Of a stretch of 64,000 nucleotides of DNA, positions 19,601-53,700 are shown one piece after another. Made by a program: the position numbers and the translations under genes. The notes beneath the pieces are model-generated. The model worked only from the letters and a program-made list of their open reading frames with translations. It was not told the origin of the DNA and made no database searches. Position 1 is the stretch's first letter, and each line of letters starts with the position of its first letter. The stretch is from the IMG/VR virus record IMGVR_UViG_3300032770_000001, positions 391,709 to 455,708 of that record; one strand, given 5' to 3'.

Positions 19601-19828
19601 TTACGCGACTGGATCAGTCGGTGCGCGGCGAGCGCCTTGACGCTTCGGACGCGGACCGCCTTTGCCGAGAACGTAGTTGACAAAGGTGTTGATGTCGAAA
19701 CGCGGATTCTCCGCACTCAACGGTTGTGCAATGCGACGTGCAAATTGTTCCATCTGCTCAGGCGAGAGACCCGATTCCTTGATCGCATCTGCGATCATGA
19801 TGTAGTCCTTACGGCTCAGGGCAACTTT
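19601..19828 (-). CDS. SRKDY...ENPRFD module, probably the +1-frame C-terminal extension of 19830..20594
   Basis: The frame reads KVA-LSRKDYIMIADAI...; the recognisable SRKDY lies upstream of the first ATG, which has no obvious RBS. Confidence 0.6.
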   Translation of the reverse strand, partial: KVALSRKDYIMIADAIKESGLSPEQMEQFARRIAQPLSAENPRFDINTFVNYVLGKGGPRPKRQGARRAPTDPVA

Positions 19829-19829
19829 G

Positions 19830-20594
19830 CTAAAGACTCCCGGAGGCTGATTTCGCGCCTGCGGGGGTAACCTTTGCAGAAGATTTGTTCACTTCACTAA
19901 CACCCTCAGCACGCGGAATTTCGAGCTTACTCGGAGCCTTCGGTTGTCCGGCTGCGTCACGATCAGTGACGTATGCGTCGGAGCCAACGGCGGCTTCTTT
20001 TTCTTCAGGTTTCTCTTCCTTGTCTTCGGATTCGGACTTGTCCTCGGACTCGGATTTTTCTTCCTTCCCCTTCTCGAACGAGGGCTTTTCGTCAATCGGA
20101 GATTCCTGCGACTCTTCGCCCTTTTCCTCACCAAGCTCAAGCTCAGCCTTGCCTTCGTCAGTGAATGCTTGTTCGGCTGGGGTTGCGCCCAGATCGACAC
20201 CGAGAACCTCGGCTGCCATCTCGATAGCGGCTGCCTGCTCATCCAGTGCCTTGTAGGACTGACGGAGGGCGTCTGCCAGCATGTCCGGCTTTTCGTCGGC
20301 AGTCTGACGGAATCCCTTGGCGTAGTTACGGGCGGCGGCGACACGAACCTTTGCCGGAGCATCGGCGGCGGCACGGACGAGACCGAGATTGGTCTGGAGA
20401 CCTTCCATCCAGTCAGCCTGACGTGCGGACTTCTCTACCAGAGAAGCCAGAATCTTCTCAAATTTCTGCGGGTTCTTGGCAGCGGCACGCATCTTCTCGT
20501 ACTTCGCCGCCTCTTCCGCTTTACGGGCTTCCTTACGGGCTACGATAGCCTCACGGAGCGCCTTGCGGTCGATTGCTTTCTTTTCCTTTGCCAT
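19830..20594 (-). CDS. K-x-A-containing putative head/core protein
   Basis: 254 aa, GGAGG RBS, late promoter; RVAAA, KEAAV, KSAS; shares the TDRDxxGQPKAP module with 48685..50214. Confidence 0.85.
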   Translation of the reverse strand: MAKEKKAIDRKALREAIVARKEARKAEEAAKYEKMRAAAKNPQKFEKILASLVEKSARQADWMEGLQTNLGLVRAAADAPAKVRVAAARNYAKGFRQTADEKPDMLADALRQSYKALDEQAAAIEMAAEVLGVDLGATPAEQAFTDEGKAELELGEEKGEESQESPIDEKPSFEKGKEEKSESEDKSESEDKEEKPEEKEAAVGSDAYVTDRDAAGQPKAPSKLEIPRAEGVSEVNKSSAKVTPAGAKSASGSL

Positions 20595-20634: not shown

Positions 20635-23600
20635 TTAGGCGACTTTCAGCCCGTCGCCCTGAATACCTGCAACAATATCTTGAATATAGCGGTGCTCGAC
20701 AACCACAGAGTCGCCCCAGTATGTTACCCCGCTTTCAGGGTTAGGCTCGCCGCTGCTGTAGCTTGAGTCGAGGTTTTCGATGATCCAGTCCTCAGCCGCC
20801 GCCGTCATTGGGGTCAACAGGAAGATGCCGCCCTCGTTGCGAACTTCAAAATCCGGCCCCTCGTAGGGAGCACCTTGTGGGGTGTACTGCGGCTTATCCG
20901 CCTTTTTCTTACGACCACGTGCGCCGGGGTGACCGCTTGACTTCTTGCTGCTGGTCAGCGGAAGTGCCTGCTGATTCGGATCGGGAGCAGGTGCTTCCGG
21001 TTGCTCTTCCTCGTACAGGTTGCCGCCGTACTGCATGAAAACCTCGTGCCCCTGCTTGAGTTCCTCGACCATATCTTCGATCTGGTAACGCTCGTGCCAG
21101 TACAGATTGCCGTTCGGATCAGCGAAGATTTCACCGGAGGTCAGAGCCCCGATGTCGGCGGGATTGACATTCTCCCAGCCGTTGGTGAAGAAGTCTTCCA
21201 TGAGTTCCCAGATGCTCTGGTACGTCTGCGCATCTTGCGGTCCACCCTGAGCAACTTCCTGAAGCAACTGTGCAGTCGGCTTCAGTTTGATGCCGCCCTT
21301 ACCGTAGAGGACATCGACGTAGGTGCCTTTGTCTTCGCCCTTGGTCGGCGTGCGTGCTTCCTGCGCATCCACTTTGTTCTGCTCGTCCTGCTGTTTCAAC
21401 TCATCAAGCGTCACAGCCGTTTTCTTTGATGCGACAGCGGAGTTCGGAACGTAACCGACTTCCGGCTGTTTTGGCTTCAGACCGAGTTGGTCTGGAGTCT
21501 TCGGATTGCCACGCTGCTTCATGTTGAGAATTGCTGGATTTGCCGCTTCCTTGTCAGATGCGATCACTTCACCTTCCTCGTCATCATCATCGAACGGGAC
21601 GTAGCCATCATAATCGGAACGCTCCGGATAGAATGCTGCCCATTCCGCCAATGCTTCAGCGTTGCCGCGACCGGATTCCTTGAAGCGAGCGATCATCTCG
21701 TTCAGATACTCATAGCCATGCGTGGTCAGCGGGTTCTTTAGGAACTCACCGCAGCCTGCGCAGTTCTGCGGACTGTCGGACTCTTGATCGAAGAACGGAC
21801 CTTTCGGATAGTTGTCGGAGTCATAGCTTGACTCGTCTTCCGGGTTCTCCGGGCCTTCGCCGTTCGCGTCGATTCTCTGCGCGATTTTTATAGCGCAGTC
21901 TTCGCACCACACGTCAGCGGCGTAGATGTATTCACCGTCGTTAGAACCACGGATACCACTGTCGGCACCGGGCTCGAATGCTTCTTTTTCCATTGTGCCC
22001 TCTTTCACTTGCTCGTTCTTAAATGTCACGAAACGGTGACGCCCACCGTGCAGAGAAGTTCCGCAGCAATCGCAAGGACGTTTCGAAAACTCATCGATGC
22101 CTTCGCCCGTCTCGCTGTCGAAGTCAGGAACCAGCCAACCCAATCTCTGGATGCCTGCCTGAATCTGCTCCATGCGCTTGTTAGCCTCTTCGCCCTGATA
22201 GTAATAATCAAGGCCGGAGTAGTCATCGTTCACTGCCGCTTGCAGACAGTCGTCGCACAACCACAAATTGTCCTGCTCAATTTCAGCGGCAGTTTTGTTT
22301 GCCTGAATGCCCATGTCTTTCAACATCTGCTTCTCTTCGTCCGTGGGGTTGTATTCCTTCTCGTGCCCGTGGAACTCTTCGATACCCGCAGGCTCTTCCA
22401 ATTCTACGTCACCGGGGGTGATGTAGTCCGCGAGGCTCTGCAACTCAGCCAGTTCCGCATAGCTAATGCGCTCGGCACGAAGTTGGCTACGGAGATATTC
22501 CAGACGCTCCTGAATTTCCTCTGGCTCCAACTCGTCCTCGTCCTCATCAATCCATGCCTTCTTGCTCGATGCTTCCTTGGAGCAAGTGCCGCAGTACCAC
22601 TTGTTGCCGATCTCGTGGCTGCCTTCGTCTACGTCAGATGAATCGAACACCTTACCGCAGCCAGCACATTCAACTTCGCGTGAAGAGGTCTTGTCGCTGC
22701 TTTCGACCGCATCCAGTCCCTCATCCACATGACGATCCATGCAGGATTCGTCGCCAGACTCAATCTCTTCGAGGTCGAGACCTTCGATGCTTTGCCCACC
22801 CTCGGCATCGACCACCGACCAAATCGCACCACACGGTCCGCACGTAACCCACCACTGTCCGTGCTCGAACGCAGGCACGCAACCTTCGTGAATCTCAGTG
22901 AGAGGGTGAGACGCGATTAGACGCTCTACTTCCATCTCCATTTCCGGAGTGTTCTGCTCCGTTTTCAACGCTGCTTTCTTCATGGTGCCCTCTTCTGACG
23001 ACATGTGGAATTTCTTGTTGGGAAGCTCCGGTGGGACGGTCTTCCGCTTCAGCCCTTCGTTTTCTTTCTCCTGTGGCAGCACAGCCATCGGTGCCCCCGG
23101 CTGTCCGGGGATCGGCTGCACTACCGGATTTGGTTCCGCTGTGGGTGCTTGCGGTTGCGCTGCTGGTGCCTGAACCGGAGCCGGAGCCGCCGCCACAGTC
23201 ATGGAAACAACCTTCTCACCCGGCTTGAGCTTCTTGGTAACGGCTTTCTCCGCTCCCTGATAATCGTTGCCGCCTACGGTTTCTTCACGCTGATTGCCTT
23301 TGGTGTCACGCAGGGTGACCTTCCACTTGGCTTCCTTCAACATCTTGATACCGTGATTGCGATTGACACTGTGCTCATTCGCGGTGTCTTCAGTCGTGCC
23401 CCATACCGGACAATTGCGGCACTGCCACATCTTCTCCGGAACGGTGACGCCCTTGAGAGCGTCCGGGTTGCGAGCTAACAACTTGTCCAAACGTCCAGCC
23501 GTCTTGCTTGCACCCTTCATTTTCTTATAAGCTTCGAATTTCTGATCCTGCGGTACACCCGGCATGTGTTCTCCACCACCACGACAAGGGCGTAAATTGC

Positions 23601-25683
23601 AGGTTACACATTCCAGACAACGAGGGCAATACAGATGCGTGCGCTCTTGCTCATCATAGTCCGGTTCCTCAGGCATGTCGGCAGGCAAGAGGTTCTCCGC
23701 AAATTCTGCGGTCTTTGACGCTTGCTTGAGCTTCGAATAACGTTCCCGCATCTGTGCTAATGTCTTTTCGTCGAAACGGATGATGTCGGCATTGCGCTTC
23801 AGACCCTCTTCAGAGCCAAATCCGCCAGTCACCAACTTCTCCTCATCGTTCACGAAATGGTAGGAACCGTCGTTGAGCTTCTCAACTTTCCACTTGGGGT
23901 CATCGAGTTTGATGCCAACGGTCTTCGGCCCGGCGGGTTTCTTGCCGCCATGAATGTATTGCTCGTAATAAGCATCGTGCTCTTCAGCACTGATTTTGCC
24001 AGCATAGCGCAATGCGTCAATCACGCCAGCGATGTAGTTGTAGGCGTTTGAATTCTTTGCTGAGTCATCCCAGATTTTCGTCAGGAAGGTGCCGACATCC
24101 AAACCACGGAGGCTATCCTTCAACTCGGCGACTTTAACTGCTCCGGCATGATAACTGCCTTGCGTGCGTCCATGCGGTGGACGCCCGGTGTCGCCTTCAG
24201 TGATCTGTGGCTGAATGCCATCATAGAATTGATCGCCGCCCTCAGCGCCGTCTTTCTTCTTAGGTTCGGTCTTCTTCATCAACTCCACGGTTTTGTCGAA
24301 GTTTTCGCTGTAGACCGGGCAATCGATGCGGTGCCGTCCATGATAGCCGCCGCAGCACTTTGAAGTGTCAATCGTCGGAACCGAAGTATCGGCAGCTTCT
24401 TTGCAAATGCAATTTTCCTTCACCCGGTCACACGCATCACAGTACGGCACACCAGCAGGCGGGTGAATATCCCGCTCAGTCTGAACCGCAGCCGCTTTCG
24501 GATCATTGATGCCGGGGACGATACCGTGTTCCCAATTCTTGCCACAGTCATTGCACTTGGCAGTCTCGAAGTCGGTCGGCATGAGCCCGTAGTCTGAGGA
24601 GCCGCAGTGTGGGCACTTCGGTTTAGCCGATGCCGTGGCGTGTACTTTCGCCTGCGGTTCTTTCATCTGAGTGATGAGATTGATAAGTTGGTATCCAGTC
24701 TCTTCGCCACGAGGCAACTGTCCTTCGGTCGCAAACTCTTCAAGTAGACCGGGCAGTTCCGAGTAGTAACGCTTCAATGAGTCCTGACCGAGGTTGGTGA
24801 CTTTCAGCCAGTCCTGTACCAGATCGCTCACCGTAATCTTGGCTTCCCCAGTGCTCTCCTGTGCGTGCTTCCAGAACAGTAAGAGAACGATCATGTTGTA
24901 CTTGGCAGCCGTGCGGGATACCTTGGTTGGGAGCCATGCGGCGAATCGCTTCGCTACGTTCTTGAATTCCTGCTCGGATTCAAACTCAGTGTGCGGCGAT
25001 GGAGCATTCAACTGCTGACTGTCGATCAAACTATAAGTTTCGTCCTCCTCGTGCTTGCCGCCAGCAGGCTGCTCGCCGGAGACTTCCTCCGGATGCTGCA
25101 CCTGACGGATATAGCTCTTGGCACGCTCGATGCGGAAGGTAAACTGCTTCTTCAGGAATTCCGTAATCTGTTCGGCCACTGGGAGCTTCTTGACGCCAGC
25201 GGGAAAGTTCTTGATGGCTCGCGGAAAGTCCTGCATCGCCTTGCCGTGCTGGAGCACGTAAAGGATGACGTGATAGATCGCCTCATCCTTCAGTTCGAAG
25301 TCGAGGGTTGTGGATGTGAGTGAGGGAACGAAGACTGTCTGAAACCACTTCGACCAATCCATCTTGGGATCGACCGGATATCCCGCCTGCTCAATGTAGG
25401 ACTTGACGAACTTGTCGAAATCCTTGTTGTAGGCGAAGACGTAGCGGATTCGTGACGCAATACGCGCCTGACCCGGTGAGATCGGGTGGAAATTGGCTGG
25501 GGTCTGAACAGGCTTCCCGGTGTACGGGTCGGCCAACCTGAAGGCGTAGCCGTCCGGTCCGGCGACTTTAGACACCACCCGGTAGGCGGAACCATCGAGA
25601 GTATCGACAATTTGCCCCGGCGCGATAAGGCGGGAAAACTTGGTCAGGTTCGCCGCTGGTACTCGTACAGCGTCCTGAGGCAT
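20635..25683 (-). CDS. 1682-aa modular polyprotein: sigma-like N-terminal domain plus more than 15 K-x-A-delimited modules
   Basis: Linkers KAAA, KEAA, KVA, KQASKTA, KGASKTA, KEA, KKAA, KEASSKKA, KTAA, KKTA, KKKA separate Zn-finger and acidic modules. Confidence 0.9.
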   Translation of the reverse strand: MPQDAVRVPAANLTKFSRLIAPGQIVDTLDGSAYRVVSKVAGPDGYAFRLADPYTGKPVQTPANFHPISPGQARIASRIRYVFAYNKDFDKFVKSYIEQAGYPVDPKMDWSKWFQTVFVPSLTSTTLDFELKDEAIYHVILYVLQHGKAMQDFPRAIKNFPAGVKKLPVAEQITEFLKKQFTFRIERAKSYIRQVQHPEEVSGEQPAGGKHEEDETYSLIDSQQLNAPSPHTEFESEQEFKNVAKRFAAWLPTKVSRTAAKYNMIVLLLFWKHAQESTGEAKITVSDLVQDWLKVTNLGQDSLKRYYSELPGLLEEFATEGQLPRGEETGYQLINLITQMKEPQAKVHATASAKPKCPHCGSSDYGLMPTDFETAKCNDCGKNWEHGIVPGINDPKAAAVQTERDIHPPAGVPYCDACDRVKENCICKEAADTSVPTIDTSKCCGGYHGRHRIDCPVYSENFDKTVELMKKTEPKKKDGAEGGDQFYDGIQPQITEGDTGRPPHGRTQGSYHAGAVKVAELKDSLRGLDVGTFLTKIWDDSAKNSNAYNYIAGVIDALRYAGKISAEEHDAYYEQYIHGGKKPAGPKTVGIKLDDPKWKVEKLNDGSYHFVNDEEKLVTGGFGSEEGLKRNADIIRFDEKTLAQMRERYSKLKQASKTAEFAENLLPADMPEEPDYDEQERTHLYCPRCLECVTCNLRPCRGGGEHMPGVPQDQKFEAYKKMKGASKTAGRLDKLLARNPDALKGVTVPEKMWQCRNCPVWGTTEDTANEHSVNRNHGIKMLKEAKWKVTLRDTKGNQREETVGGNDYQGAEKAVTKKLKPGEKVVSMTVAAAPAPVQAPAAQPQAPTAEPNPVVQPIPGQPGAPMAVLPQEKENEGLKRKTVPPELPNKKFHMSSEEGTMKKAALKTEQNTPEMEMEVERLIASHPLTEIHEGCVPAFEHGQWWVTCGPCGAIWSVVDAEGGQSIEGLDLEEIESGDESCMDRHVDEGLDAVESSDKTSSREVECAGCGKVFDSSDVDEGSHEIGNKWYCGTCSKEASSKKAWIDEDEDELEPEEIQERLEYLRSQLRAERISYAELAELQSLADYITPGDVELEEPAGIEEFHGHEKEYNPTDEEKQMLKDMGIQANKTAAEIEQDNLWLCDDCLQAAVNDDYSGLDYYYQGEEANKRMEQIQAGIQRLGWLVPDFDSETGEGIDEFSKRPCDCCGTSLHGGRHRFVTFKNEQVKEGTMEKEAFEPGADSGIRGSNDGEYIYAADVWCEDCAIKIAQRIDANGEGPENPEDESSYDSDNYPKGPFFDQESDSPQNCAGCGEFLKNPLTTHGYEYLNEMIARFKESGRGNAEALAEWAAFYPERSDYDGYVPFDDDDEEGEVIASDKEAANPAILNMKQRGNPKTPDQLGLKPKQPEVGYVPNSAVASKKTAVTLDELKQQDEQNKVDAQEARTPTKGEDKGTYVDVLYGKGGIKLKPTAQLLQEVAQGGPQDAQTYQSIWELMEDFFTNGWENVNPADIGALTSGEIFADPNGNLYWHERYQIEDMVEELKQGHEVFMQYGGNLYEEEQPEAPAPDPNQQALPLTSSKKSSGHPGARGRKKKADKPQYTPQGAPYEGPDFEVRNEGGIFLLTPMTAAAEDWIIENLDSSYSSGEPNPESGVTYWGDSVVVEHRYIQDIVAGIQGDGLKVA

Positions 25684-25695
25684 GTTCTTCCGTCC

Positions 25696-25926
25696 TTAGT
25701 CGATGTGGATGTCGTTCGGGTCGCCTTCGGTCTTCTCGTCTTCCTTCATGATCTGCTCAAGGGTCTTGAGGTACTCTTCGTGATCCTCAAAAGCCTGCGG
25801 GTCATGCGGAGCGCCCTTTTCGTCCTTGATCGTGGACTGAGCTTTCTTCAGTCCAAGGCGGTCAAGCTCGCCTGCGTACAGGCGGTTCATTGCGGATGAC
25901 TCTGCTGCTGCGAATTTCTTTGCCAT
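25696..25926 (-). CDS. Small putative head protein
   Basis: 76 aa, AGGAG RBS; KKFAAA, KKAQ. Confidence 0.75.
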   Translation of the reverse strand: MAKKFAAAESSAMNRLYAGELDRLGLKKAQSTIKDEKGAPHDPQAFEDHEEYLKTLEQIMKEDEKTEGDPNDIHID

Positions 25927-25960
25927 TTGTTATCTCCTAGCTAGGGAAAGCGGAAAACCG

Positions 25961-25982
25961 CTCTATACTTGAATACCGTAGT
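25961..25982 (-). promoter_or_regulatory. Putative late promoter (ACTAC-N12-TAGAG)
   Basis: Would drive 25926 and the 1682-aa polyprotein. Confidence 0.6.
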
Positions 25983-26004
25983 AAGGATTTGTGTTCACAA
26001 CCGT

Positions 26005-26676
26005 TTAGGTGATCGTCACCGTTGCGCTCGCGGTCAGCCCCAGAGGGTGCCCCGTCGCGTCGTAGCACGTCATGGTCAGCAGGATAGTGTGAGTCCACCC
26101 CGTGCCCTTGATGTAAATACCTGATCCAGCAGTAGTTATGCGACCGGAATCGAACGGCGGATCGATGCCGTTGTTTCCCGTAATCTCAATCTGAGCCACG
26201 TTGATGGTGTCCCAGATCAGGGTGACGGAATGTCCTGCCGTCGTGTTGCTGGGATTGGCTGCCAGAGCCGCCTGTGGCGGCAGGCTGCTGTCCCCGGTGG
26301 ACTGATAGCTCGCGATCAAAGCGAAACCGGGCACAATCGGTGCCGCCGAGACGACGGCGATGACCTGCTGTACAAATGGGTCCGGGGTTGCCGTGCAACC
26401 AATGTAGTTGGCATCACCGACGTAAATAGCCGACAGGTTGTGGAAGCCGACTGTCAGGATGGTGAGATCGAGTTCTGCCGTGGAAATTGTGCTGGTCGGC
26501 GAGAGCGGCGTCAGGTTTACGGTCCCGAGCAGGTTGACGCCATCGAAGAAATTGACCGCGCCTGATGGCGGGGCAACGTTAAACGAAGACGCCGTGACCG
26601 TGACCGTCATCGCGATCTGTTGTTCGAACTGCGACGGCGACGGCGAAACGACGAGAGTGGCGGTTGTGGATACCAT
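26005..26676 (-). CDS. Ig-like (Big_3 type) domain virion protein
   Basis: STTATLVVSPSPS...PSGAVNFFDGVNLLGTVNL...GFHNLSAIYVGDANY matches the bacterial Ig group 3 pattern. Confidence 0.8.
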   Translation of the reverse strand: MVSTTATLVVSPSPSQFEQQIAMTVTVTASSFNVAPPSGAVNFFDGVNLLGTVNLTPLSPTSTISTAELDLTILTVGFHNLSAIYVGDANYIGCTATPDPFVQQVIAVVSAAPIVPGFALIASYQSTGDSSLPPQAALAANPSNTTAGHSVTLIWDTINVAQIEITGNNGIDPPFDSGRITTAGSGIYIKGTGWTHTILLTMTCYDATGHPLGLTASATVTIT

Positions 26677-27306: not shown

Positions 27307-30300
27307 TTAGATTCGGCGACCCCACTGGTAGTTGATCGAAACGTTGGTTCCAGTGATAGTCTGCACGCCGCCGTCCTGACCACCGTTCTGGAACTGTGTG
27401 AAGCCGAAGAACGGGTGCACTTTGTAGCAACCCAGCGAAGCCCCAGCCGGAGCGTTCGTCGGGTTCTGCACGGCGTACCAGTCCCACCAGCCATGAACCG
27501 CAGCACTCTCAAGGCTGCTGTACGGAGCCAGCAAGTTCGGACTCTGACTGTCTATGCTGATGTTCGCCACGTCGGTCGCGATACCAAGGCAGTTGGGATC
27601 GAACGAAGCTGCCGGAGCCGTGCCAACAGCGGCGAGGCTGTTACCCAGACGAGCCGCATCTATTGCTACCTGTGAGGCGTTGTAGTCAACCAGATAGAAC
27701 GGGCCGAACTCAGTGATTGTGTTGCTGGTCGCGGAATTGCGCCCATGCTGCACAGTCACACGAAGATTCGTGATACCAGTTTGACGGGCAAACGAGTACG
27801 CATAACCGTTATGGGCACGCCACAGCGGAGTGATTTGCGTGTAGCTAGTTCCGCCGTTGGTTGAAACTTCAAACTTCAAACCACGGCACAAATTGCGATT
27901 CTGCAAGAATTTGTAAGTTGAACCCTCAGCAGGGTTGACTTGCGAACCGTAGCTGTAAAACACCAGATCAACGAAGTTGCAGGTTGTCTGCAATACTGAA
28001 GTGCTGAGACGGAACGTGCTGACCGATGGCAAGCTGGAGTTCGTTGCCGTGATGTTCAAGCGGTAGTAACGGTACGAACCCGGTGTCGTCACATTATAGG
28101 CGTAGCCGCGTGACGCCGATACACCAGTGCGTGTATCCAGCGTAGTCCACGAGGAGTTATCATTCGAACCCTGCAACTGGAAATTCGTCGGCAGACCGCT
28201 GCTTGGGTTATCCGAAGTGTCATAAACGGTGCGGAAACCATAAGACAGAACTGTCTGAGCATTGCCGAGACCGAGATCGATTTCGAGCCATTGTGTCGGA
28301 GAGCCACTAGCCTGCCAGAACTCTTGCGGGTTATTCATGAAGGCTTTCCAGCTTGCGGTAGTCGTACCGCTTTGTGAACTGCTGGAAGCCGTGTAAGTGT
28401 TGGAGCCCACCGTCCATGAGTACGGGTTGCTGCCTGTGACGATGTTAACGTTCGCCGGAGCATAAGCATAGCTTCCGGTAGCGAATCCGTTCGGCGTCCA
28501 TACCAGAACCAGCGGTGAGGCGTCGAAGCCTACGTTAGAGCCGTCCAATTTGTTCCACGAAGCCGACGTTGTCCAGCCCTTATAAGCTGTAGTCAACGAC
28601 GCAGTGTTCGGCGTTGTGCTGGTCGGAGCAGTCCAAGTCGCACCACCCGGATCGGTGTCGATAAAGTACGGAGTGATGGCTTCTTCTTGAGCAATGGTGC
28701 GGCTATCAGTGTTGGTGAACGTCTGACCCGCGAATTGTGCCCACGAAGAGCGCAACTTACGAGCAAACTTGGTGTTGCCATAGCACATGTTCCACGTGTG
28801 GAACTCGCCGTTAGTCCATGAAGTCGAAGACAACGGGCCGAACTGTACAGCCAAACCATACGGCAGGTTGATCGTGCTGGTGTAGCCGCCAGCATACGCA
28901 CCCACAGTGTAGGGGTTGCTCGAAGCGTCGGAGAAACTGTCCGCCATTACCCAATTGCCGCCCGAATATTTCCAGTAAGTTGGCAGGAATGCCATGCCCT
29001 GCCCAGCCGCACGACCATAGGTCGCGTTTGAGGGCAAACCATCCTGTCCACCACCAGCGCAGCGCAAGAACACCATGTAATTGTCGGTCAACGAAACTGG
29101 GAACATCCACGCCCCACGGTCGAGGAACTGTCCGGAAACCGGAGTCAAATCCATCCAAGACCAATAATCTTGCTGAACGCTTTGAATCGATGGAGGATTG
29201 CTGCTGTAGCTGTTGCGTTGAATCAACGACAAGCTGGTCGGCGAACTCCAGTTAAACCCCGGAGGAGCCAAGTAAATTGGGCACGTAGCGTTGTTCGAGT
29301 GAATCGGCTGATGCGGGAAGAACGTGGTGCGGTCGGCGTTCGTCGCATAGTCACGTGCGTGCGTAATCGAGATCGGCTGCGTGGCCGGGTTGAACTGGCT
29401 CGGATTGAAGCTATCGTTCGCGAACAATGTGCTTGACGCGACAGCGGTCAACTGCGTATTGCTCAGCGAAGCCGTAGAGCCGGATACGTTGAGTGTAAAG
29501 ACCGATGCGCAATGCCAGCTACCCTGAACCAACAGGATGTTTGGAGCCACGTCATGCATGAATGCGTTGATGTCGTAGAACCAAAAATCTGGGTTCTGGC
29601 TTGGTGAAGTCGCATTGGCACCGAAGTTCGTACCGTACTGAATCGGTGAAGAACCGTTGATCTTGGACGTGTTCCATGTCGCAGCGACCGGATCGTATGC
29701 CTGCACTTGCCAGTTGACATTAGTGACTGCACCGAAAGCGTTCGATACAGTGTACGGGCCGCCGCCCGAAACGCTAACGTCCTCGCACAGAATGTAGAGC
29801 TTGCCATCGCGAGGGGAAATCATCTCGCTCAATGAACGACCGTTATGACGCCCGGTGTTTCCACTGAAGGTGATCGAACCCCATGCGCCCGTACCGATGA
29901 AGTAATTGACGACACCAATGCGAGCCGTAGCGACCAAGCCCGTCTGTGTAGTGCGCGGATCGGCTGTCATGGTGCCGTAAAGCGCCCACAGTTCGTAACA
30001 AGTCGCCGTACCTGTGTCGGAGGCGTTGGTGTAGTTGCCGACCGTTGTCGGGACTTGGAAGCTGCTTGTGGATAATCCGGTTGCCGACACCACATAGGTG
30101 ATGTTGTTAATTCCGGACTCCTGCGTGCCTGTGATGTTCACCACATCGCCAGCTTGGAAATTATTTGCTGCCGTCACAGTCAGAACGCCGCCAGTTGCGG
30201 AAGTCGCCGTGATCGGCCCGGTGATTGTGCGCGTCTTCAATGCGCCGTAAGCCTCGCCCACGTGCGCAACTGCTGGAGCATTGGTCGCGAAACTGAATGA

Positions 30301-31893
30301 ACCGGAGCCAGCCAGTTCGAGAACACCGTTGGTCTGCGTGAAATCGTAACGAGCCAGTTTGCCATCCTCAGAGAGGAAGAAGACCTGATATCCCAATACC
30401 TGCGTAGAGTTGCTGGTATAGTAAGTCGGCACAGTCGCAACACCTGCAATACGCATCGCGGTGGAGCCTGTCCACGTATCCGCAAGATCAAAGAACAAGA
30501 GCGGCACCATCGAAGACTTATTGCTCCAGATCGAGCATTTGGTGTCCATCACCAAGCCGTAATATTCTTCGTTGATGTTGAATGTCGCCGCCTGACGAAC
30601 GCGGAAGTCCGGGTTATAAACTGCAATACCACCCGAAGTTTCTCCCTGTGCGGAGTAAACACTGTGCACCGTGTTGATGGTGAATTGGGTGCTGGTTGCA
30701 GTAGCCACAGTCCAAAGCTGACCATTGAGCCACGTGTTGTTGCCGTTGGTCAAACCCTGAATGAAGACAATCTGGTTTGTCGAGAACGTATTTTTCGCAG
30801 TGACCGTAACTACGGTGCCGGATGAGGCCACAGAAGTGATTGCCGCACCCACATCACGCCCACCTGCCCAAACATATTCCTGTTGATCGTTGACGTAGGT
30901 ATACGGGTTCTGAATATTCTGACTTGAAACTACGACGCCCGTGCCGAGTGTCTGACCATCTTCCTCATACGGATAAGCGAATGAGTTGAAGCCGTTGTCA
31001 AATACTTTTGCCAAATGGAACGATAGACCACGACTGTTCAGCTTGCGCACACCTGTGATCTGGAACAGTTCGCGGTAGTTGTCGCTCGCGGCTGAGTTAA
31101 GACCGCCGCTCTGACGCAGAGGATCGCTAGTCGCCGGGTATGTCTGGCCTAAAGTATTTGGAGTTTCCGCACCCGACCACGCTGGCAACTGACCTGACAC
31201 GCTGTTGTTGTCATTAAATCCCGTCATGCGGAGCGAAGGGCGATTCTCCATGAAAAACTTCAGGCTGCCGGAGCCAGTTGACTGTGAGCCCGTGCTTGCA
31301 ATGTGGAAAATCATGTAGCTCGCAGGCATGTAGATCGAGCGTGTCAACGCCGAGGACATGTTAATGATCGAGTCTGTACCATCGGAGGGCGAAGAGTTCG
31401 AGTCTAGCCACTGATGAGCAATGTCCGCCGTCATCGGCCATGACGCTACACCATGCCCGTATACGGGTTCATAATCCGCAGATTCTCCATTTGGATCGTG
31501 GCTATAATCGGCATAGACAAGACCACCGACAAGACTCCCAATGTAGCCGTCACGAAAACCGCTCACAGCAGGCGGAACAGCGGTTCCCACGAATGCCATT
31601 GTGCGAACGAAATATCCACCGTTCGGACGCCATGCCTGACCACTGGACGTACCATCACCGGAGCCCGTTGTCTGCATGTAGCAATCGCTGCTCGGCGAGG
31701 CTGGGTTTGTTGAAGCCTGAGGATTGATGCTTCCCCATGTACTCAGAAGATGGAAGTAACGTGCGGTCTGTCCGTTTACGTTGTCCGGAATGATACCGAA
31801 TTCTGAAGCGAATGCACTGGCATTGCGTGTGACCGGAGAAGTAGCAAGAAACTGCCAGTTTAGATCGGCGATTTGATATGGGTGAATTGCCAT
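27307..31893 (-). CDS. Large tail fibre / receptor-binding protein with a discoidin (F5/8 type C)-like domain
   Basis: 1528 aa, S/T/G/N-rich; ASSSSQ...WKAF...QWLEIDLG...PTNFQLQGSNDNSSWTTLD...YRYYRLNIT. Confidence 0.85.
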   Translation of the reverse strand: MAIHPYQIADLNWQFLATSPVTRNASAFASEFGIIPDNVNGQTARYFHLLSTWGSINPQASTNPASPSSDCYMQTTGSGDGTSSGQAWRPNGGYFVRTMAFVGTAVPPAVSGFRDGYIGSLVGGLVYADYSHDPNGESADYEPVYGHGVASWPMTADIAHQWLDSNSSPSDGTDSIINMSSALTRSIYMPASYMIFHIASTGSQSTGSGSLKFFMENRPSLRMTGFNDNNSVSGQLPAWSGAETPNTLGQTYPATSDPLRQSGGLNSAASDNYRELFQITGVRKLNSRGLSFHLAKVFDNGFNSFAYPYEEDGQTLGTGVVVSSQNIQNPYTYVNDQQEYVWAGGRDVGAAITSVASSGTVVTVTAKNTFSTNQIVFIQGLTNGNNTWLNGQLWTVATATSTQFTINTVHSVYSAQGETSGGIAVYNPDFRVRQAATFNINEEYYGLVMDTKCSIWSNKSSMVPLLFFDLADTWTGSTAMRIAGVATVPTYYTSNSTQVLGYQVFFLSEDGKLARYDFTQTNGVLELAGSGSFSFATNAPAVAHVGEAYGALKTRTITGPITATSATGGVLTVTAANNFQAGDVVNITGTQESGINNITYVVSATGLSTSSFQVPTTVGNYTNASDTGTATCYELWALYGTMTADPRTTQTGLVATARIGVVNYFIGTGAWGSITFSGNTGRHNGRSLSEMISPRDGKLYILCEDVSVSGGGPYTVSNAFGAVTNVNWQVQAYDPVAATWNTSKINGSSPIQYGTNFGANATSPSQNPDFWFYDINAFMHDVAPNILLVQGSWHCASVFTLNVSGSTASLSNTQLTAVASSTLFANDSFNPSQFNPATQPISITHARDYATNADRTTFFPHQPIHSNNATCPIYLAPPGFNWSSPTSLSLIQRNSYSSNPPSIQSVQQDYWSWMDLTPVSGQFLDRGAWMFPVSLTDNYMVFLRCAGGGQDGLPSNATYGRAAGQGMAFLPTYWKYSGGNWVMADSFSDASSNPYTVGAYAGGYTSTINLPYGLAVQFGPLSSTSWTNGEFHTWNMCYGNTKFARKLRSSWAQFAGQTFTNTDSRTIAQEEAITPYFIDTDPGGATWTAPTSTTPNTASLTTAYKGWTTSASWNKLDGSNVGFDASPLVLVWTPNGFATGSYAYAPANVNIVTGSNPYSWTVGSNTYTASSSSQSGTTTASWKAFMNNPQEFWQASGSPTQWLEIDLGLGNAQTVLSYGFRTVYDTSDNPSSGLPTNFQLQGSNDNSSWTTLDTRTGVSASRGYAYNVTTPGSYRYYRLNITATNSSLPSVSTFRLSTSVLQTTCNFVDLVFYSYGSQVNPAEGSTYKFLQNRNLCRGLKFEVSTNGGTSYTQITPLWRAHNGYAYSFARQTGITNLRVTVQHGRNSATSNTITEFGPFYLVDYNASQVAIDAARLGNSLAAVGTAPAASFDPNCLGIATDVANISIDSQSPNLLAPYSSLESAAVHGWWDWYAVQNPTNAPAGASLGCYKVHPFFGFTQFQNGGQDGGVQTITGTNVSINYQWGRRI

Positions 31894-32504
31894 TATGCTA
31901 CCCCAACGATGGACAGGAAGTAGGAGACCTGAAGAATGTCAGGTGTTCCCGAACCGCCGTTACGTCCATGAATTAAAATCGATGACGGCAGAACCACGAG
32001 GGTCTGCGGAATAAAAATTGTCGGCTGTTGGTTAACCGCACCGAACTGTGCGTCCGGAATGTCTCCACCTGCGGACGATGACTGCCAACCTGTCAGACCG
32101 AGAGCTTTCAACTGAAAATCCAGCGGCAACTTTGTCCACTCGAAGAACAATTTGTGGCGTCCACCGACCGGAGTCAACGGTGCCGTGTAGGTCTGACGGG
32201 TCTGCCATTGCGGGTCGGCCCCAGTATCTACCGAGTTGTTTGCGGTTGCACAATACGGGGCATACGGATTGGTGCGATCAAATGTGAAGCCTGTCCAGTT
32301 CGTATAGCCTATAGGATCATCGGGAAGCAGGAAGCACCACGGCGCTCCACCGCCCTGCATCTGAGTGATGAAGATGTGCCCGTAAGCGCAGAGAACGTCA
32401 TCCGAGATGGCGTTATCCTTAGACCACTCGGCGACCGTCTCACCTGTCTTGCCGGAGATGACCTTAAGCTGGACTTCGTTTTCGAATTTCAATCCTTGAT
32501 ACAT
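31893..32504 (-). CDS. Putative tail/baseplate protein
   Basis: 203 aa, translationally coupled within the structural operon. Confidence 0.7.
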   Translation of the reverse strand: MYQGLKFENEVQLKVISGKTGETVAEWSKDNAISDDVLCAYGHIFITQMQGGGAPWCFLLPDDPIGYTNWTGFTFDRTNPYAPYCATANNSVDTGADPQWQTRQTYTAPLTPVGGRHKLFFEWTKLPLDFQLKALGLTGWQSSSAGGDIPDAQFGAVNQQPTIFIPQTLVVLPSSILIHGRNGGSGTPDILQVSYFLSIVGVA

Positions 32505-38895: not shown

Positions 38896-39855
38896 TTAGT
38901 TCTCGCCGTAGTTGGCGGTCGAGTTGAAGCGACCATTGACCGTAAGACGCTGCACGCCGGACGGGTTGAACACGAGGAAGCCGAGGTTCTCGAAGATCGA
39001 GAAGCCGATCTGACGGAGGTCAGGACGGTCGGCGCTCATGACCGTGAGCGGAATACGCTCTGGGATAACGCCGAGGAACTCTGCGTCCGCCAGAATGTAG
39101 ATCGAGCCGTAGCCGACCTTACGCGACTGGAGGAGCGTTGCGCCCCAGAGATAGCCCATCACGCCCGTTTTCAACAGCTTGCGCTGTGTTTCGCGGTCGA
39201 TGTTCTGTTGGGTCCACTTCAACAGGTCCGTGTAGTCACGGGGGTTGAAGAAGACGAACGCGACTGAGAGGTCATGACGCTGCACCTGACCAAAGCCGTC
39301 TGCCATCGAGTTGATGTCAATCGGAGCGTTGATCGGAATGTCAGGGTTGTAGACCGGATCATTCGAGTTCTTACCCGCTGCGCTGTTCGCGACACCGTCA
39401 AACAGAACGAACACGTATCCGTCTTCGGCTGCGCCCACTTCGGCTTTCGCCAAGTTCAGTGAACGAGCAACCAAGTCGAAACGGCGCTCTTTGATCTGCG
39501 TGATCGGGATCATCGGATTGGACACGATTTCGAACGTCGGAACCGTGACGCGCTTCGGTTTTGTAACGCGGACGATGTCACCACCTTCTTCGCCGACGAT
39601 GAATGCTTCGACGAAGGACGAACCCGGAGTCGAGCCAACGGTCATCGCGTTGACATCGAATTCCTTGTCGTAGATGGGCAGTGCGCCATCCGGAAGAGTT
39701 TCGACCATGAGAGCCTTGCGAGCAATGCTCATATAGTCACGGCGACGACGCAGGGACGGACCGAGCGAAGCCGCAAGCTTCTGACGCCCACCCGCCGTCT
39801 TCAAAAGTTGGCCGAGCATTTGCGTCTGCTGTTGTGTGCGAGAAAGTTGTGCCAT
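38896..39855 (-). CDS. Major capsid protein (HK97 fold)
   Basis: 319 aa; gene order protease-scaffold-decoration-MCP-terminator; DYMSIARKALMVETLPDGALPIYDKE, VPTFEIVSNP, GFSIFENLGFLVFNP; GAGGAG RBS. Confidence 0.9.
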   Translation of the reverse strand: MAQLSRTQQQTQMLGQLLKTAGGRQKLAASLGPSLRRRRDYMSIARKALMVETLPDGALPIYDKEFDVNAMTVGSTPGSSFVEAFIVGEEGGDIVRVTKPKRVTVPTFEIVSNPMIPITQIKERRFDLVARSLNLAKAEVGAAEDGYVFVLFDGVANSAAGKNSNDPVYNPDIPINAPIDINSMADGFGQVQRHDLSVAFVFFNPRDYTDLLKWTQQNIDRETQRKLLKTGVMGYLWGATLLQSRKVGYGSIYILADAEFLGVIPERIPLTVMSADRPDLRQIGFSIFENLGFLVFNPSGVQRLTVNGRFNSTANYGEN

Positions 39856-48684: not shown

Positions 48685-50214
48685 TTACTCAGCGGCGGCT
48701 ACCAGCTTGAGACCACCGAACACCGAGGACTGCTTTCCTTTGCTGCCCTTGGCATCCTTGATCTTCTCGGCTTCTGCCGCCGACTCTTCCTGAATCTCCT
48801 GCTTGTTGAGGACTTTCACGGCCTCATCAAACATGTCGCCTGCGCGGAAAATGGCTTCAACCGCTTCACGCACCGGACGCGAACTGTTGGTCTGAACCAA
48901 CGGCTTTGCATCCAAATACATGCGCTTCAGCGTTTCGCCTAGCCTTTCCGCCTCCTTCACAGCCTTGCTCGTGCTCATCTCGGCTGCTAATTTGATAGGC
49001 GCTGTCGTTTCTGGACGCTTGATCCCGGTGTTGTCGTCACGCTCTGAGTGCGCTTTCGCGATCTCAGGGACGCGACTTCCACCGTCTGTCACATCCATCG
49101 TGTCTTGATCCTGAACGAACCAAGCACCACCGTTGCCACTCGCAATCTTGCGTGCGATTATGGCAGCCGCGTACTTCGCACCTGCATCAAATGCAGCTTC
49201 GATCTGCTGTGAAGATTCCTTCTTGTTGTGAATTGACCATGCCGTTGCATAGGCTTTGTCTTTTTCGCCGGGGTACTCATCCTTCAGCTTGTGCATGAGG
49301 GATTCGCTGATTCCCGGAGGCGTAACGGCAACCTTTGCCGAGGCGTCCTTCTCATCCTCGAAACCGACGAGGGCGAGACCGCCAAAACGCTTCAGGTCGA
49401 AGATCGGTGACGCGGCCTTGGACGAAGCAGCTTTCGGCGCTTCAGGTGCCACAGGCTCAACGGGGCGATTCTTCAAAATTTCCGCGAGGCGTTCAACCGC
49501 AGCTTGCACGGACTTGTTGGCTTCGAAGCCCTCCAGACCCGTAAGGTCTTTCACTAGCTGAGCGATGAACTCGCTCGGCAGCGACTCGAACAGCGTGTCG
49601 AGAGACCCATCACCAACCGGGCCGCCCGGTGCCGGAGCAGCGGGAGCGGGGGCTGGAGCCGGAGGCGGCACAGGAGCGGCAGCCGCAGGAGCAGGAGGAA
49701 TCGGGGCGGCACCAGCAGCCGGGTCTTCCGCTTCCTTCTTTTTCTTGCGTGCAGCTTCTTTATCAGCAGCCAAACGAGGAACATCAGCCTTTTCAGGAGC
49801 TTTCGGCTGACCCTTCTCGTCACGGTCGGTCACGAAGGCGGAATCCGCTGAACCAGCGGCATCCTTCTTCGACGCCATTGATGGCTTTCCGACTGGAGCA
49901 GTTTGAGTTACCTTTGCGGGGCGTTGTTCCCCACGCCAATTTGCAATCATGTCAACCTCTTGTTTTACTTTCTGTGCGATCTCCGGCGAGTACGAATCGT
50001 CGAGATAGCTGTCAGAGTTTGGTGCTGCTGAAACTTCTTTCAGGTAATCAATCGATGATGCCAACTGATCGACCTTTGGATCATCCAGCCCTTCCTGCAT
50101 CCACTGATTCAGAAGCGATTCACCAATCGAAATCGCATCACGTACAGTTTCAGGTGACGTGAGGATCGTGCTTTTCTTCGTTGCCGCTGCGCGGCGTTCC
50201 ATCAGTTTGCTCAT
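48685..50214 (-). CDS. K-x-A-punctuated putative head/core protein
   Basis: 509 aa; KDAA, KEAA, KEA, KAASSKAAS, KDASAKVA, KIAS, KLAA; KAYATAWSI motif. Confidence 0.8.
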   Translation of the reverse strand: MSKLMERRAAATKKSTILTSPETVRDAISIGESLLNQWMQEGLDDPKVDQLASSIDYLKEVSAAPNSDSYLDDSYSPEIAQKVKQEVDMIANWRGEQRPAKVTQTAPVGKPSMASKKDAAGSADSAFVTDRDEKGQPKAPEKADVPRLAADKEAARKKKKEAEDPAAGAAPIPPAPAAAAPVPPPAPAPAPAAPAPGGPVGDGSLDTLFESLPSEFIAQLVKDLTGLEGFEANKSVQAAVERLAEILKNRPVEPVAPEAPKAASSKAASPIFDLKRFGGLALVGFEDEKDASAKVAVTPPGISESLMHKLKDEYPGEKDKAYATAWSIHNKKESSQQIEAAFDAGAKYAAAIIARKIASGNGGAWFVQDQDTMDVTDGGSRVPEIAKAHSERDDNTGIKRPETTAPIKLAAEMSTSKAVKEAERLGETLKRMYLDAKPLVQTNSSRPVREAVEAIFRAGDMFDEAVKVLNKQEIQEESAAEAEKIKDAKGSKGKQSSVFGGLKLVAAAE

Positions 50215-50703: not shown

Positions 50704-53700
50704 TTATGCATTGTTCAAGTTCGTGTTGACCGTGAAGACCACGCTCACATACAGCAAGCTGAAGAGCGGCTGGTAAGTCACAGTAACGTCTGCCTGCGTC
50801 GGATCGACCGGGTCTTGCACGACCGACAGGCTCTTGTAACCAGCGATGATCTGCTGATCCACCAAGCTCTTCAGGCGAGCATTGCAAACCACCTGAATGT
50901 CTGTGGTGAGCGAGTCCAGCATCTTGCGACCGATGAACTGGTTGAGATCGCTGCGGAACACCTGAGCCACGTAGTCAGAGATCGTGGTCGAAGTCGGCTC
51001 GGAAGTGAGCGGGTTCGACGGATCAGTGGACTTGTAATGGCGAATCTTGAGCGAACCATTGTTGTCCAAGATGCAGGTTAAGCCGTCCGCTGCCATCAGG
51101 TCCATCGTCGGATCATCGTACTTGATGAACAGGCGGGTGAACCCAACCAAATTCTGGAACGTCAGCGTGGTCGCCACGTCGTTCGCCGGGTTGCAGTTCA
51201 AACCAGCCATTGCCGCTGCGATGAACTCGCCGGAGACCGGGTACTCGACTGTCACACCCGTGGACGGGTTGGTGATGTTCACACCGGACAGCGGGGTGCC
51301 GATGGCGATGATGCGCTTGTTGGCGATGCTGCGTGCCGATTGACGCATCGAAGCCGGAGTTGCGAACTGATCGTAACCGATGAAGCCGATAGCCTCACCC
51401 TTGTTGCGGATCGTCGCCTGACTCGTCAGGAAGCGGCTGAGGTACTGTTGAACTGTCGGGCTGGTGCTCAGCGGAACGATAACGTTCGCCTTGCTGCTGC
51501 TACCCGGCAGCGCAGTTGCCAGAGACGCGATTGCGTTGATGTAGTCCTGATCGGACGCCTGATTGGTGCCCGGAACCACAGGAACCTGAATGACGCCGAA
51601 CAACTGCACACCGTTCTGCGACATGAACTGGATGCCCAGCGAAACGCGGTTGACCGTGTTCGGCTGACCATACACAGCGTATGCGTCGGCAGGGTTGGTG
51701 TACATCTGGATCGCGTAGTCGGCAGCCGTCTTGTTGCGCGTGTAGCTGACGTAGTAGAACTCGCCCACGTTCGGATCGTTGCCGGACTTCACGAAGGTGC
51801 TCACGATCACCGTATCGCCAGCGGTCGAACCGTAGTTCGATGACACAATCGTCCAAATACCGGGAATCGCAATGCGGTTGTTAGACTCAGCCGGAGCAGT
51901 TCCCGGATTGCCGCAGTGACGGATCGCTGCATTTGCGCCAGTGGCGTCTGCCTTCACAATGAAGTTCAGCACGTCGCCGACTTGGAAGTTGTAGCTCGCC
52001 GGGATGCTCGGCACGCCGTAAGCGGCGTGATCGGCAGGATTGACCACCGTGATGCGGAAGCCAGTGACCTCGTCCTCGTAAGTCTGATCGAGGTAGCCGA
52101 TTGCGGTGCCCTGTGAACCGGAACCCTTTGAATTGGTCGAAGTGACCGTGTAGCTGTGGGTGACCGGAGTCGTAACCGCATCATGGCCGCTAGCCAGCGG
52201 AGTTGCCGCCGTGGTGCTTGCCTGACCGGAGGTTGTACCCGAAGCCACGCATACGATCTGACCGCCGCTGATGGTCTCAGCAGACGGGAACCATGTCTGG
52301 ATCACAGCCAGAGTGTTAGCAGTAGCGTTGCCGTTCCAGTTGGCGTAGATCGTGACCACGTCGCCGACCACGCTCACCGGGATCGCGTTGAGGCTCGAAG
52401 CATCGATTGCGATCTGAACGTTGTTGCCATTTGCACCCGGCGTTGTTGCCGTGAAGGTCAGAGTGCCTGCACCCTGAACGATAGCGACCGAAGCCGGGAC
52501 CGCAGGAGAGATAACGTTTGTACCGTCATTGTTGAAAGTCAGTGTGACCGTTTCATCAACTGCCGCACCAGCTTGCGCCTGAATGTCAGGGAAGTTGAAC
52601 GGATAGACGATGCCAGTCGCTTGGAAGGCTGCGTTCTGCGCAACCGTCGCACTTGCGAAGGTCACCAGCGGCATAACGCGCTGGAGTTCGTCGGAGATGA
52701 TGAAGGTGCCGTTGCCAGCGTAACCGGGCTGAACAACCTCGACCGTATACTGGTGGTCTGACAAGCGGCTACGGTAGTAGCTCGCCCACACACCCACAGG
52801 TTCGAGTGGCTGATTGCTGACGCTCGTTGACGGTGCCGGAGGATTGAACAGAGTTACAGTCTGTGCTGCACCAGCGAGACGGGCAACCTTGACTGCGCCG
52901 TTGAGGAACGCGGTTAGAGGATCGCTGCCGACGTAAACCTGAATCAGGCTGACATCGTCAGTTTCGACTGCCTGTCCGCTGCCATCCACCGGAACATCGG
53001 GGATGGAGTAAACTGTGTTCTTACCGTTGACTGCGCCTGTCAGCGGTTGCAGGTAGACCTTTTCGTCAGCGAGAGTTGCGTTAATCTCGGACGGGGTGAA
53101 GTTCGCCTGCTCGCCAGCGGCAGAGATGTCGATAGCTTCCGTGACATAGGAGCCCCACTGCACTGTGCCGTTACCAGCGGAGTCCTTGCCGAGCACGTAA
53201 TCAGTGCCCTGAATGAAGTCTGCACGATCCGGGCCGAGACCGACAAGCGTGATTGCTTCCACATTGGAATCGGGGAGCAGATCGAACGTGTTCGGCCACG
53301 TGTTGAAGTAGTAGCTGATCGTCAAGGAAGAGGTTGTGCCGCCCTGTGCCGTGGTAGGAGGCACGGGACTCGCCAGTGTGACGAGACCATGCTGACCGTC
53401 GAGCGATGCAACCGTTACCGGGTTGCCATTCAGTTCAACAGTCACCTTGGTGACATCGGTTGTCACGACGCCGCCGTTGGTGCCATCGACCACCGGGGTG
53501 TGTGCGACCTTGAAAACTGTGTTGCTGTTCTGACCGGAACCACCTGAGTATGCGACCGATGCGCCTGCCGTCAATGCCTGCGTTGGCGCTGTCGAAGTAC
53601 CTGCGGTAAGGAACCCGCCGTCCAGCGTCGGGATGCCAGCCGCGATCAGAGTGATGAGGCTTGCAACCGTGCGGAGCGTGCCGTTCGCGTTGCGGATGTT

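Follow-up and report, generated by a model that had tools for sequence, protein, structure and literature searches.

The P0001-P0002 locus

The stretch of DNA analyzed here (the window) comprises 64,000 nucleotides (nt), positions 391,709 to 455,708 of IMG/VR virus record IMGVR_UViG_3300032770_000001, and forms the final 64 kb of this 455,708-bp huge-phage record from a wetland metagenome. On its minus strand, within a block of virion genes, a 254-amino-acid (aa) open reading frame (ORF), P0001 (20594..19830), meets a small ORF, P0002, in the +1 frame. The subject of this report is the junction between the two, a candidate site of programmed +1 ribosomal frameshifting. P0001 has an N-terminal helical domain (approximately residues 1 to 150) followed by an acidic disordered linker carrying FVTDRD..PKAP and IPRAEG-type motifs, and it ends in G-S-L-stop. 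Its 3' end reads GCC TCC GGG AGT CTT TAG C, and the putative shift site, CUU UAG C (19829..19835, minus strand), is made up of the CTT at 19835-19833, the TAG at 19832-19830, and the next C at 19829.

The +1 frame is already open 19 codons upstream of the TAG and continues beyond it as P0002 (19601..19831, minus strand), 76 codons followed by a stop at 19603-19601. P0002 begins S-K-V-A-L-S-R-K-D-Y-I-M-I-A-D-A-I-K, and P0001 and P0002 together would make a 330-aa trans-frame product; readthrough of the TAG in frame 0 would add just 7 residues. Both the frame-0 end and the +1 reading S-KVA-LSRKDY had been given in the original prediction and are exact on the minus strand. It had also held that the module lacks a start codon at its N terminus, and scanning the +1 frame for ATG, GTG, and TTG indeed found none ahead of the ATG at 19798 (19796..19798, minus strand). 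This ATG is codon 12 of P0002 and is where gene callers start a 65-aa ORF. Residues 7 to 55 of P0002 (19667..19813, minus strand) are modeled as a three-helix module, with helices at residues 7 to 18, 24 to 41, and 47 to 55 and a predicted local distance difference test (pLDDT) score of 85. We call it the RKDY module after its first helix, R-K-D-Y-I-M-I-A-D-A-I-K, in which the ATG at 19798 encodes a conserved internal methionine, Met12.

Eight of the 577 crude gene ends in the 455,708-bp genome are CTT-stop, and CTT makes up 18.5% of its Leu codons. Such an ending is not rare on its own, so its significance rests on comparison with relatives. We searched for these exhaustively with HMMER, using the 76-aa +1 product, and with a word-based search using P0001. 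In the HMMER search, P0002 aligned, starting at its residue 2, with the C-terminal domains of longer proteins, sharing 62% identity with P0004 and 69% with P0043. The relatives found as fused single ORFs included P0004 (418 aa), P0009 (351 aa), P0011 (379 aa), and P0018 (476 aa), and the N-terminal parts of the fused relatives matched P0001 end to end (59% identity and E 9e-74 for P0009). The word-based search listed 27 proteins, which leaves 26 relatives once P0009, already known from the HMMER search, is set aside; approximately 16 of these were further in-frame fusions of 320 to 430 aa, for a total of about 20 relatives of 320 to 476 aa with both parts in one frame. These proteins start with a helical N-domain and end in the three-helix module, and an acidic disordered linker joins the two. 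The AlphaFold model of the fused relative P0028 agrees: five helices span residues 10 to 158, the acidic linker is disordered, and the three helices of the C-terminal module are predicted with confidence.

Since both parts are homologous to single-frame fusions, they point to one ancestral gene, and we conclude that the 254-aa and small ORFs belong to one gene and one protein read in two frames. Other relatives have the short form and end as P0001 does: P0030 in K-V-T-P-T-G-K-A-A-R-G-S-L, P0042 in A-S-G-S-L, P0046 in A-R-G-R-L, and P0040 in C-G-S-L. The original prediction had taken the KVA that follows the junction for a cleavage motif. That idea is not supported by the alignment, in which relatives have K-K-A, K-T-A, K-V-A, or K-E-A at what is the segment before module helix 1.

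Conservation of the junction

Removing one G from the GGG ahead of the junction would give an in-frame S-G-V-F-S-K-V-A, and the original prediction had accordingly allowed for a single extra G arising by mutation or by a sequencing or assembly error. The junction recurred letter for letter in L002-L005, four ENA assemblies of different samples, making five with the window. The sequencing runs found to contain the locus were DNA runs, none of them RNA. Contigs from four wetland runs, mapped to the locus, gave thin coverage, and the sole contig that bridged the site, the independent X3, spanned 19642-19905 with zero differences. An identical junction in independent assemblies excludes an assembly error. 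The same frame structure was moreover present in 13 diverged relatives from other studies; G-S-L-stop is the conserved frame-0 state in distant relatives, and the "GVF" reading is simply the +1 translation of conserved nucleotides. At the level of assemblies, an artefactual extra G is thus close to impossible. Two Logan contigs from independent runs, X2 and X5, both stopped exactly at 19834, one base into the CTT; these ends could reflect sparse coverage or, if the assembly graph branches there, strain variation beside the site.

Other strains differed from the window by substitutions only, all of them synonymous. The ratio of synonymous to nonsynonymous differences was 3:0 in ORF1, and in the +1 part, window versus strain L003, it was 6:0. 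The +1 part is therefore under purifying selection. A pseudogene would have relaxed selection downstream of a disruption private to one lineage; we found the 6:0 ratio and, as described below, the same junction in both deep clades of the family.

We collected the corresponding junctions from the DNA of short-form relatives and from a DNA pattern scan of metagenome contigs and aligned 14 distinct versions, those of the window and of L008, L009, L030, L032, L034, L023, L025, L021, L035, L024, L037, L045, and L050. They share a cassette of 36 to 43 nt, AAGG-NN-ACCCC...GGGA-NN-CTTT-stop, after which the +1 frame is open. AAGG, ACCCC, GGGA, and, after two variable bases, CTTT were invariant in 14 of 14, always with a stop next. 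That stop was TAA in seven versions, TGA in four, and TAG in three, the window included, and the base after it was C in nine (again with the window), G in four, and T in one. The codon ahead of CTT varied (AGT, AGC, AGG, or AAT), as did the codon ahead of GGG. Ten chance matches to the upstream pattern all had a sense codon after CTT. Comparison with related phages had been proposed as a check, with a continuous frame as the outcome that would count against frameshifting; it turned up both the roughly 20 continuous frames described above and the 13 relatives with the same CUU-stop cassette.

In 8 of the 14 versions, the +1 frame enters the RKDY module. L009 and L030 have 42 conserved linker codons between the stop and the first ATG, including an FVKxIPQAQG that is also seen upstream in frame 0. 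These two versions are nearly identical, with TAA in one and TAG in the other, a change that is silent as a stop and exchanges Asn for Ser in the +1 frame. In the remaining six (L021, L023, L025, L034, L037, and L050), a different, SH3-like ORF follows in the +1 frame, which is open in six of six; in L025 and L037, the SH3-like domain has no canonical start nearby. Judging from these arrangements, the cassette may also fuse the N-domain to an SH3-like gene. A CGTATA motif (R-I-L in the +1 frame) is conserved in the short gap of five of the SH3-type versions, all but L025.

In a maximum-likelihood tree of the N-domain, each of the two deep clades contains cassette forms interspersed with fused ones, and the well-supported branches require no fewer than five changes. 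This distribution means that the cassette is old or exchanged, not a private mutation. In L035/L036 (relative P0040, four contigs; L035:2180-2420), a 1-nt insertion in the C-run and a 4-nt deletion before GTGGGAG flank 33 linker codons, and the pair of indels restores frame-0 arrival at GGG AGT CTT TAA. Taken together, the pattern of the cassette across relatives fits a functional recoding signal and not a private frameshift mutation. The fused L028, from a 463-kb phage (P0043, P0039, and P0004), has at 2841-2939 an in-frame linker, G-A-V-L-T-S-I-I-K-K-A-M-S, encoded by GGG GCA GTT TTG ACC TCG. It resembles the trans-frame G-S-L|D-S-T-V-K-K-T-A-M-S of L008, and on this likeness it looks as if a cassette was there resolved to one frame via a small indel.

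The invariant GGGA and two variable bases, GGGAGU in the window (19836..19841, minus strand), occupy positions -6 to -1 from CUU and make up both a G-run resembling a Shine-Dalgarno (SD) sequence and the 3' arm of a predicted hairpin; AGU would be the codon in the ribosomal exit (E) site. The predicted mRNA hairpin is two tiered, CCCG...inner stem...CGGG (19839..19865, minus strand), with its last pair at G(-4) and a 3-nt spacer to CUU. Farther upstream, the invariant AAGG (19871..19874, minus strand), a Lys codon plus G, is complementary to CUUU in 14 of 14 versions; in free mRNA, this pairing would lengthen the hairpin to cover the shift site. RNAalifold paired ACCCC(G/A) with (C/U)GGG and AAGG with CUUU. 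Paired cells in the alignment amounted to 96.4%, versus 30 to 52% with the partners slid, and the -7 pair showed G-C/A-U covariation. When folding was limited to the stretch up to -4, which is already out of the ribosome, the two-tier hairpin that ends with the G(-4) pair was again predicted in 10 of 10 lineages, with a folding free energy of -8.9 to -16.8 kcal/mol and z scores of -0.65 to -4.6; the inner stems differed in sequence.

The original prediction had placed an SD-like run 3 nt upstream of the shift site, by analogy with prfB. Its GGG does lie in the prfB register; the remainder of the run does not. Of the upstream elements, the conserved hairpin with its end at -4 has the better support. 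The genes of this phage use GGAG-type SD sequences.

Routes to the +1 frame

The case made here is comparative and computational throughout; it draws on the frame structure, the homology, the cassette with its potential hairpin, and the purifying selection, from which we infer slippage. We consider it probable that programmed +1 ribosomal frameshifting, in which tRNA-Leu moves from CUU to UUU, gives rise to both a 254-aa and a 330-aa product. Such an inference, framed as prfB-like, was the core of the original prediction, and it is well supported at the sequence level by the fused relatives, by the 14 cassettes with three different stops, and by the lack of a start ahead of the module N terminus. 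A frame-0 ribosome would reach the site with CUU (19835-19833) in the peptidyl (P) site and UAG in the aminoacyl (A) site. Part of the ribosomes would terminate there and release the 254-aa helical-plus-acidic protein. In the remainder, held at a slowly read stop, peptidyl-tRNA-Leu(GAG) would re-pair from CUU to UUU, one base forward, and decoding would resume at AGC to give the 330-aa product with the C-terminal RKDY module. The phage genome has two tRNA-Leu(GAG) genes. An invariant CUU is what P-site slippage predicts. The stimulator would most likely be a duplex ending 3 nt before CUU, beside the E-site codon, formed by the hairpin refolding behind the ribosome, by GGGAG pairing with the 16S anti-SD, or by both.

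By analogy with frameshifted phage structural genes, the likely purpose would be to set how much short and long product is made, in a proportion that is constant or changes with the stage of infection. A low copy number of a cargo, which the original prediction had proposed as the outcome, found no support.

Several observations weigh against frameshifting at this site or against parts of the scheme above. The outer pairing of AAGG with CUUU could not form while CUU occupies the P site, so the slippage scheme gives no reason for its conservation. Only GGG (-6 to -4) is in the prfB register, the bases at -9 to -7 not being purines, and a 5-bp duplex between GGGAG and the anti-SD would leave a 1-nt spacer, probably too close. 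The SH3-like gene has its own SD sequence and start in L021, L023, L034, and L050, where the cassette could be merely a conserved C terminus. L024 (2742-2825) has a TAA, 17 codons before the cassette, where its close relative L045 (3616-3699) has CAA (Gln); this may be a premature stop or a variant, and some copies may thus be decaying. Most relatives manage without the cassette. Finally, the sequence AAGGA stands 7 nt ahead of the ATG at 19798, and a 65-aa product could also be made.

That last observation also bears on a different account, in which the gene was split by a one-base disruption, the 254-aa protein is the sole product of ORF1, and the module is made from the ATG at 19798 (65 aa) or not at all. 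Gene callers give a 254-aa and a 65-aa gene in every assembly, and the module exists as a small standalone gene in unrelated phage contigs (L006 and L007). Those standalone homologs, like the fused ones, all open the module at M/L-[ST]-[RK]-K-D-Y in the family alignment, however. The window, where the family's conserved Met position is CTG, keeps A-L-S-R-K-D-Y-I upstream of its ATG, as does fused P0004. A start at 19798 would fall in the middle of helix 1 and, by the structure model of the window's sequence, would cost 5 of its 12 residues. The supposed SD sequence AAGGA consists of the K-D codons of the RKDY motif, and fused L028 holds the same internal AAG GAC TAC ATC ATG, which makes both AAGGA and the ATG inherited internal codons. 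A mutation private to one lineage, moreover, would not turn up across both deep clades as one cassette with three different stops, and L009 and L030 have their 42 conserved codons past the stop with no start codon. We regard a split gene as unlikely, and independent initiation at 19798, which the original prediction had named as the finding that would refute it, is disfavored.

Ribosomes might instead terminate at the UAG and restart downstream, giving two separate proteins in coupled amounts; an SD-like GGGAG stands just ahead of the stop, and the ATG at 19798 follows 32 nt downstream. Yet the window has no start codon in the module frame within normal reach of GGGAG, and in L009, L030, and L032 the first ATG lies 33 to 43 codons off, across a gap of conserved coding sequence. 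Conservation of the module also extends to its N-terminal residues ahead of the ATG. There is accordingly only a very slim chance of termination-reinitiation.

Other ways of recoding the site are quadruplet decoding of the stop and next base by an unusual tRNA, a -2 shift, or a short hop, perhaps helped by phage factors. The genome does encode candidates for such factors, namely, a pair of tRNA(CUA) of the amber-suppressor type, a GCAA tRNA whose anticodon loop has 8 nt, a transfer-messenger RNA (tmRNA), and a truncated RF1-like GGQ protein. The anticodon loop of either tRNA(CUA), however, has the normal 7 nt; UUGC, the quadruplet that the GCAA tRNA would decode, is in the wrong frame at this site; and the relatives have UAA, UGA, or UAG followed by C, G, or U, which no single quadruplet fits. 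We consider a route of this kind very unlikely. The phage tRNA(CUA), GCAA tRNA, tmRNA, and release-factor-like protein could still affect the balance between termination and +1 shifting at the UAG.

Two further candidates were rejected. Genome-wide recoding of TAG, which the two tRNA(CUA) might suggest, does not agree with a coding density of 92% under the standard code, with no excess of long in-frame extensions after TAG, and transcriptional slippage would have at most GGG and TTT, the longest homopolymers at the site, to act on.

The prfB signal, as surveyed over 12,753 genomes, consists of an SD-like AGGGGG, 3 nt, CTTT with its stop (TGA), and C, and some members of the prfB family are frameshifted while others are in frame (PMC12421855). 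The phage site is like it in having CUUU with CUU in the P site, a stop directly after, C after the stop (9 of 14 here), and G at -6 to -4. As in prfB, the protein continues in the +1 frame without a start codon, and the family has both frameshifted and in-frame members. It differs in the gene concerned and in the position of the site, which is near the C-terminal third here and at codon 26 in prfB. Three stops are used here, the full AGGGGG is absent, and a conserved hairpin ends where the SD duplex of prfB ends. The prfB circuit is one of release-factor autoregulation; this gene is not a release factor, and its stop varies. With all three stops among the relatives, the logic cannot be release-factor autoregulation, and the site, though mechanically like that of prfB, stands outside the prfB regulatory circuit.

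In the PRFect survey, every CUU-stop case in RECODE was prfB (PMC10885494), and our search of the literature for a CUU-stop frameshift in phage found none. An upstream hairpin adjacent to the E site has been shown to stimulate +1 shifting at CUUUGA by 70S ribosomes in vitro, mimicking the SD:anti-SD duplex (PMC6321510). The cassette resembles that engineered stimulator in having a stable hairpin beside the E-site codon upstream of a CUU-stop. The engineered case is an artificial construct, whereas the cassette is natural and occurs in at least 10 lineages, with a hairpin that is computationally predicted only.

Among phage structural genes, lambda gpG/gpGT and T7 10A/10B arise by -1 shifts on heptamers. 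Listeria phage PSA reportedly shifts at proline codons by a stop, with a downstream structure. Two isoforms of the PSA capsid and tail proteins are described as arising via +1 frameshift (Zimmer 2003, pmid 14507382). The present gene would resemble those of PSA, lambda, and T7 in having a short and a C-terminally extended product from one start, a place in a virion gene block, and a ratio set by recoding efficiency. It differs in that none of them is known to use a CUU-stop and in that many relatives here make the long form only.

The proposed mechanism is a known one, the CUU-stop +1 shift of prfB being a textbook example of bacterial recoding; what would be new is a second, unrelated gene family using it in huge phages, with three stops and with a hairpin in the position of the SD duplex. 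If this is true, CUU-stop +1 shifting is a general tool and not a curiosity of one gene, and stimulation of +1 shifting by a hairpin, hitherto shown in engineered constructs only, could be studied in a natural setting. It would also correct annotation, the gene now being called as a 254-aa ORF and an orphan ORF of 65 to 125 aa; annotators could look for a hairpin, GGGA-NN-CTTT-stop, and a homolog continuing in the +1 frame. More tentatively, one might picture a portable, self-contained +1 cassette that uses a hairpin in cis, and not the anti-SD, as its duplex. It would be kept or exchanged among huge phages, turn an always-fused protein into a short/long pair, sometimes join another gene, and perhaps have its output tuned in the course of infection by the phage RF1-like factor and suppressor tRNAs.

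Function and genome setting

Pfam and PHROG scans of both parts, the neighbors, and the fused relatives gave just a weak match to phrog_2922, a family without known function to which the RKDY module would belong. No match came from BLAST comparison of 50,697 phage records with the DNA of the locus or with the module's protein sequence, nor from a profile search of PDB sequences. Neither the complete fused model nor that of the module had a Foldseek match at E <= 0.001, and searching the ESM Atlas by shape and features returned viral hypotheticals only. P0001/P0002 is thus a phage protein without assigned function in a virion gene block.

The original prediction had called P0001 a head protein. 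We rejected a capsid or scaffold protein as an unsupported identity: there was no supporting Pfam, PHROG, PDB-sequence, Foldseek, or Atlas match, and the context gave no support either, since the neighbors of the gene are a giant ORF and genes of tail-like type. A separate gene approximately 19 kb away (38896-39855, minus strand) encodes the major head protein.

The RKDY three-helix module is an uncharacterized small domain family. It is widespread in phage proteins, as a standalone protein of 63 to 76 aa, in tandem pairs, or inside proteins of 333 to 1173 aa, these larger proteins having unrelated partner domains. Examples are P0012, P0013, P0015, P0020-P0022, L006:198-389, and L007:5-211. 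The standalone small proteins and phrog_2922 belong to the same module family; the difference is that here the module is reached only via a frame change.

The virion block on the minus strand of the window also includes a gene for a sheath-like protein (50704-54642, minus strand) and one for a tail protein with an F5/8-type-C domain (27307-31893, minus strand). The frameshift locus lies directly downstream of a 1682-aa ORF (20635-25683, minus strand) that has no family match, with tail-like genes nearby. A 76-aa ORF (25696-25926, minus strand) ends in TAA, and the 1682-aa ORF starts 10 nt later in the same frame.

The phage genome uses the standard genetic code, with a crude coding density of 92% and all three stops in use. 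Genome-wide, in-frame extensions of at least 100 codons followed 12.7% of TAA-ended genes versus 5% of TAG-ended and 5.9% of TGA-ended genes, and this excess after TAA is probably due to tight gene packing. There are 62 tRNAs in the genome, among which the two tRNA(CUA) and the GCAA tRNA, a possible quadruplet reader, cluster together. The genome also has the tmRNA and a 218-aa truncated release-factor-like ORF with GGQ and an RF1-like P-P-T motif. The tRNA cluster, tmRNA, and release-factor-like ORF lie outside the window (G000 25852-26302, minus strand; 30867-31271; and 134039-134362; L058:1219-1875).

A second G-S-L-stop site in the phage genome was considered as a cassette and rejected as unsupported. 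It ends the P0051 gene (G000 31595-32266, minus strand; L055:1296-1967), with G-S-L-stop at 31595-31600, and is followed by an 83-codon +1 ORF, P0050 (L055:1046-1297). The sole relatives, P0052 and P0053, lack a P0050-like part and have unrelated C termini. The P0051 gene ends in K-T-A-G-S-L-stop, and its GCGGGG-TCT-CTT-TGA-C has a G-run and a 3-nt spacer closer to those of prfB.

Residues 199 to 228 of P0001, within a 31-residue stretch of the form [FY]-V-T-D-R-D...P-K-A-P, recur at 61% identity elsewhere in the window (49774-49866), inside a 509-aa ORF (48685-50214, minus strand). The short [FY]-V-T-D-R-D motif is also present in a 193-aa ORF (G000 138544-139125). By sequence likeness, the recurring stretch would be a shared linker or signal motif.

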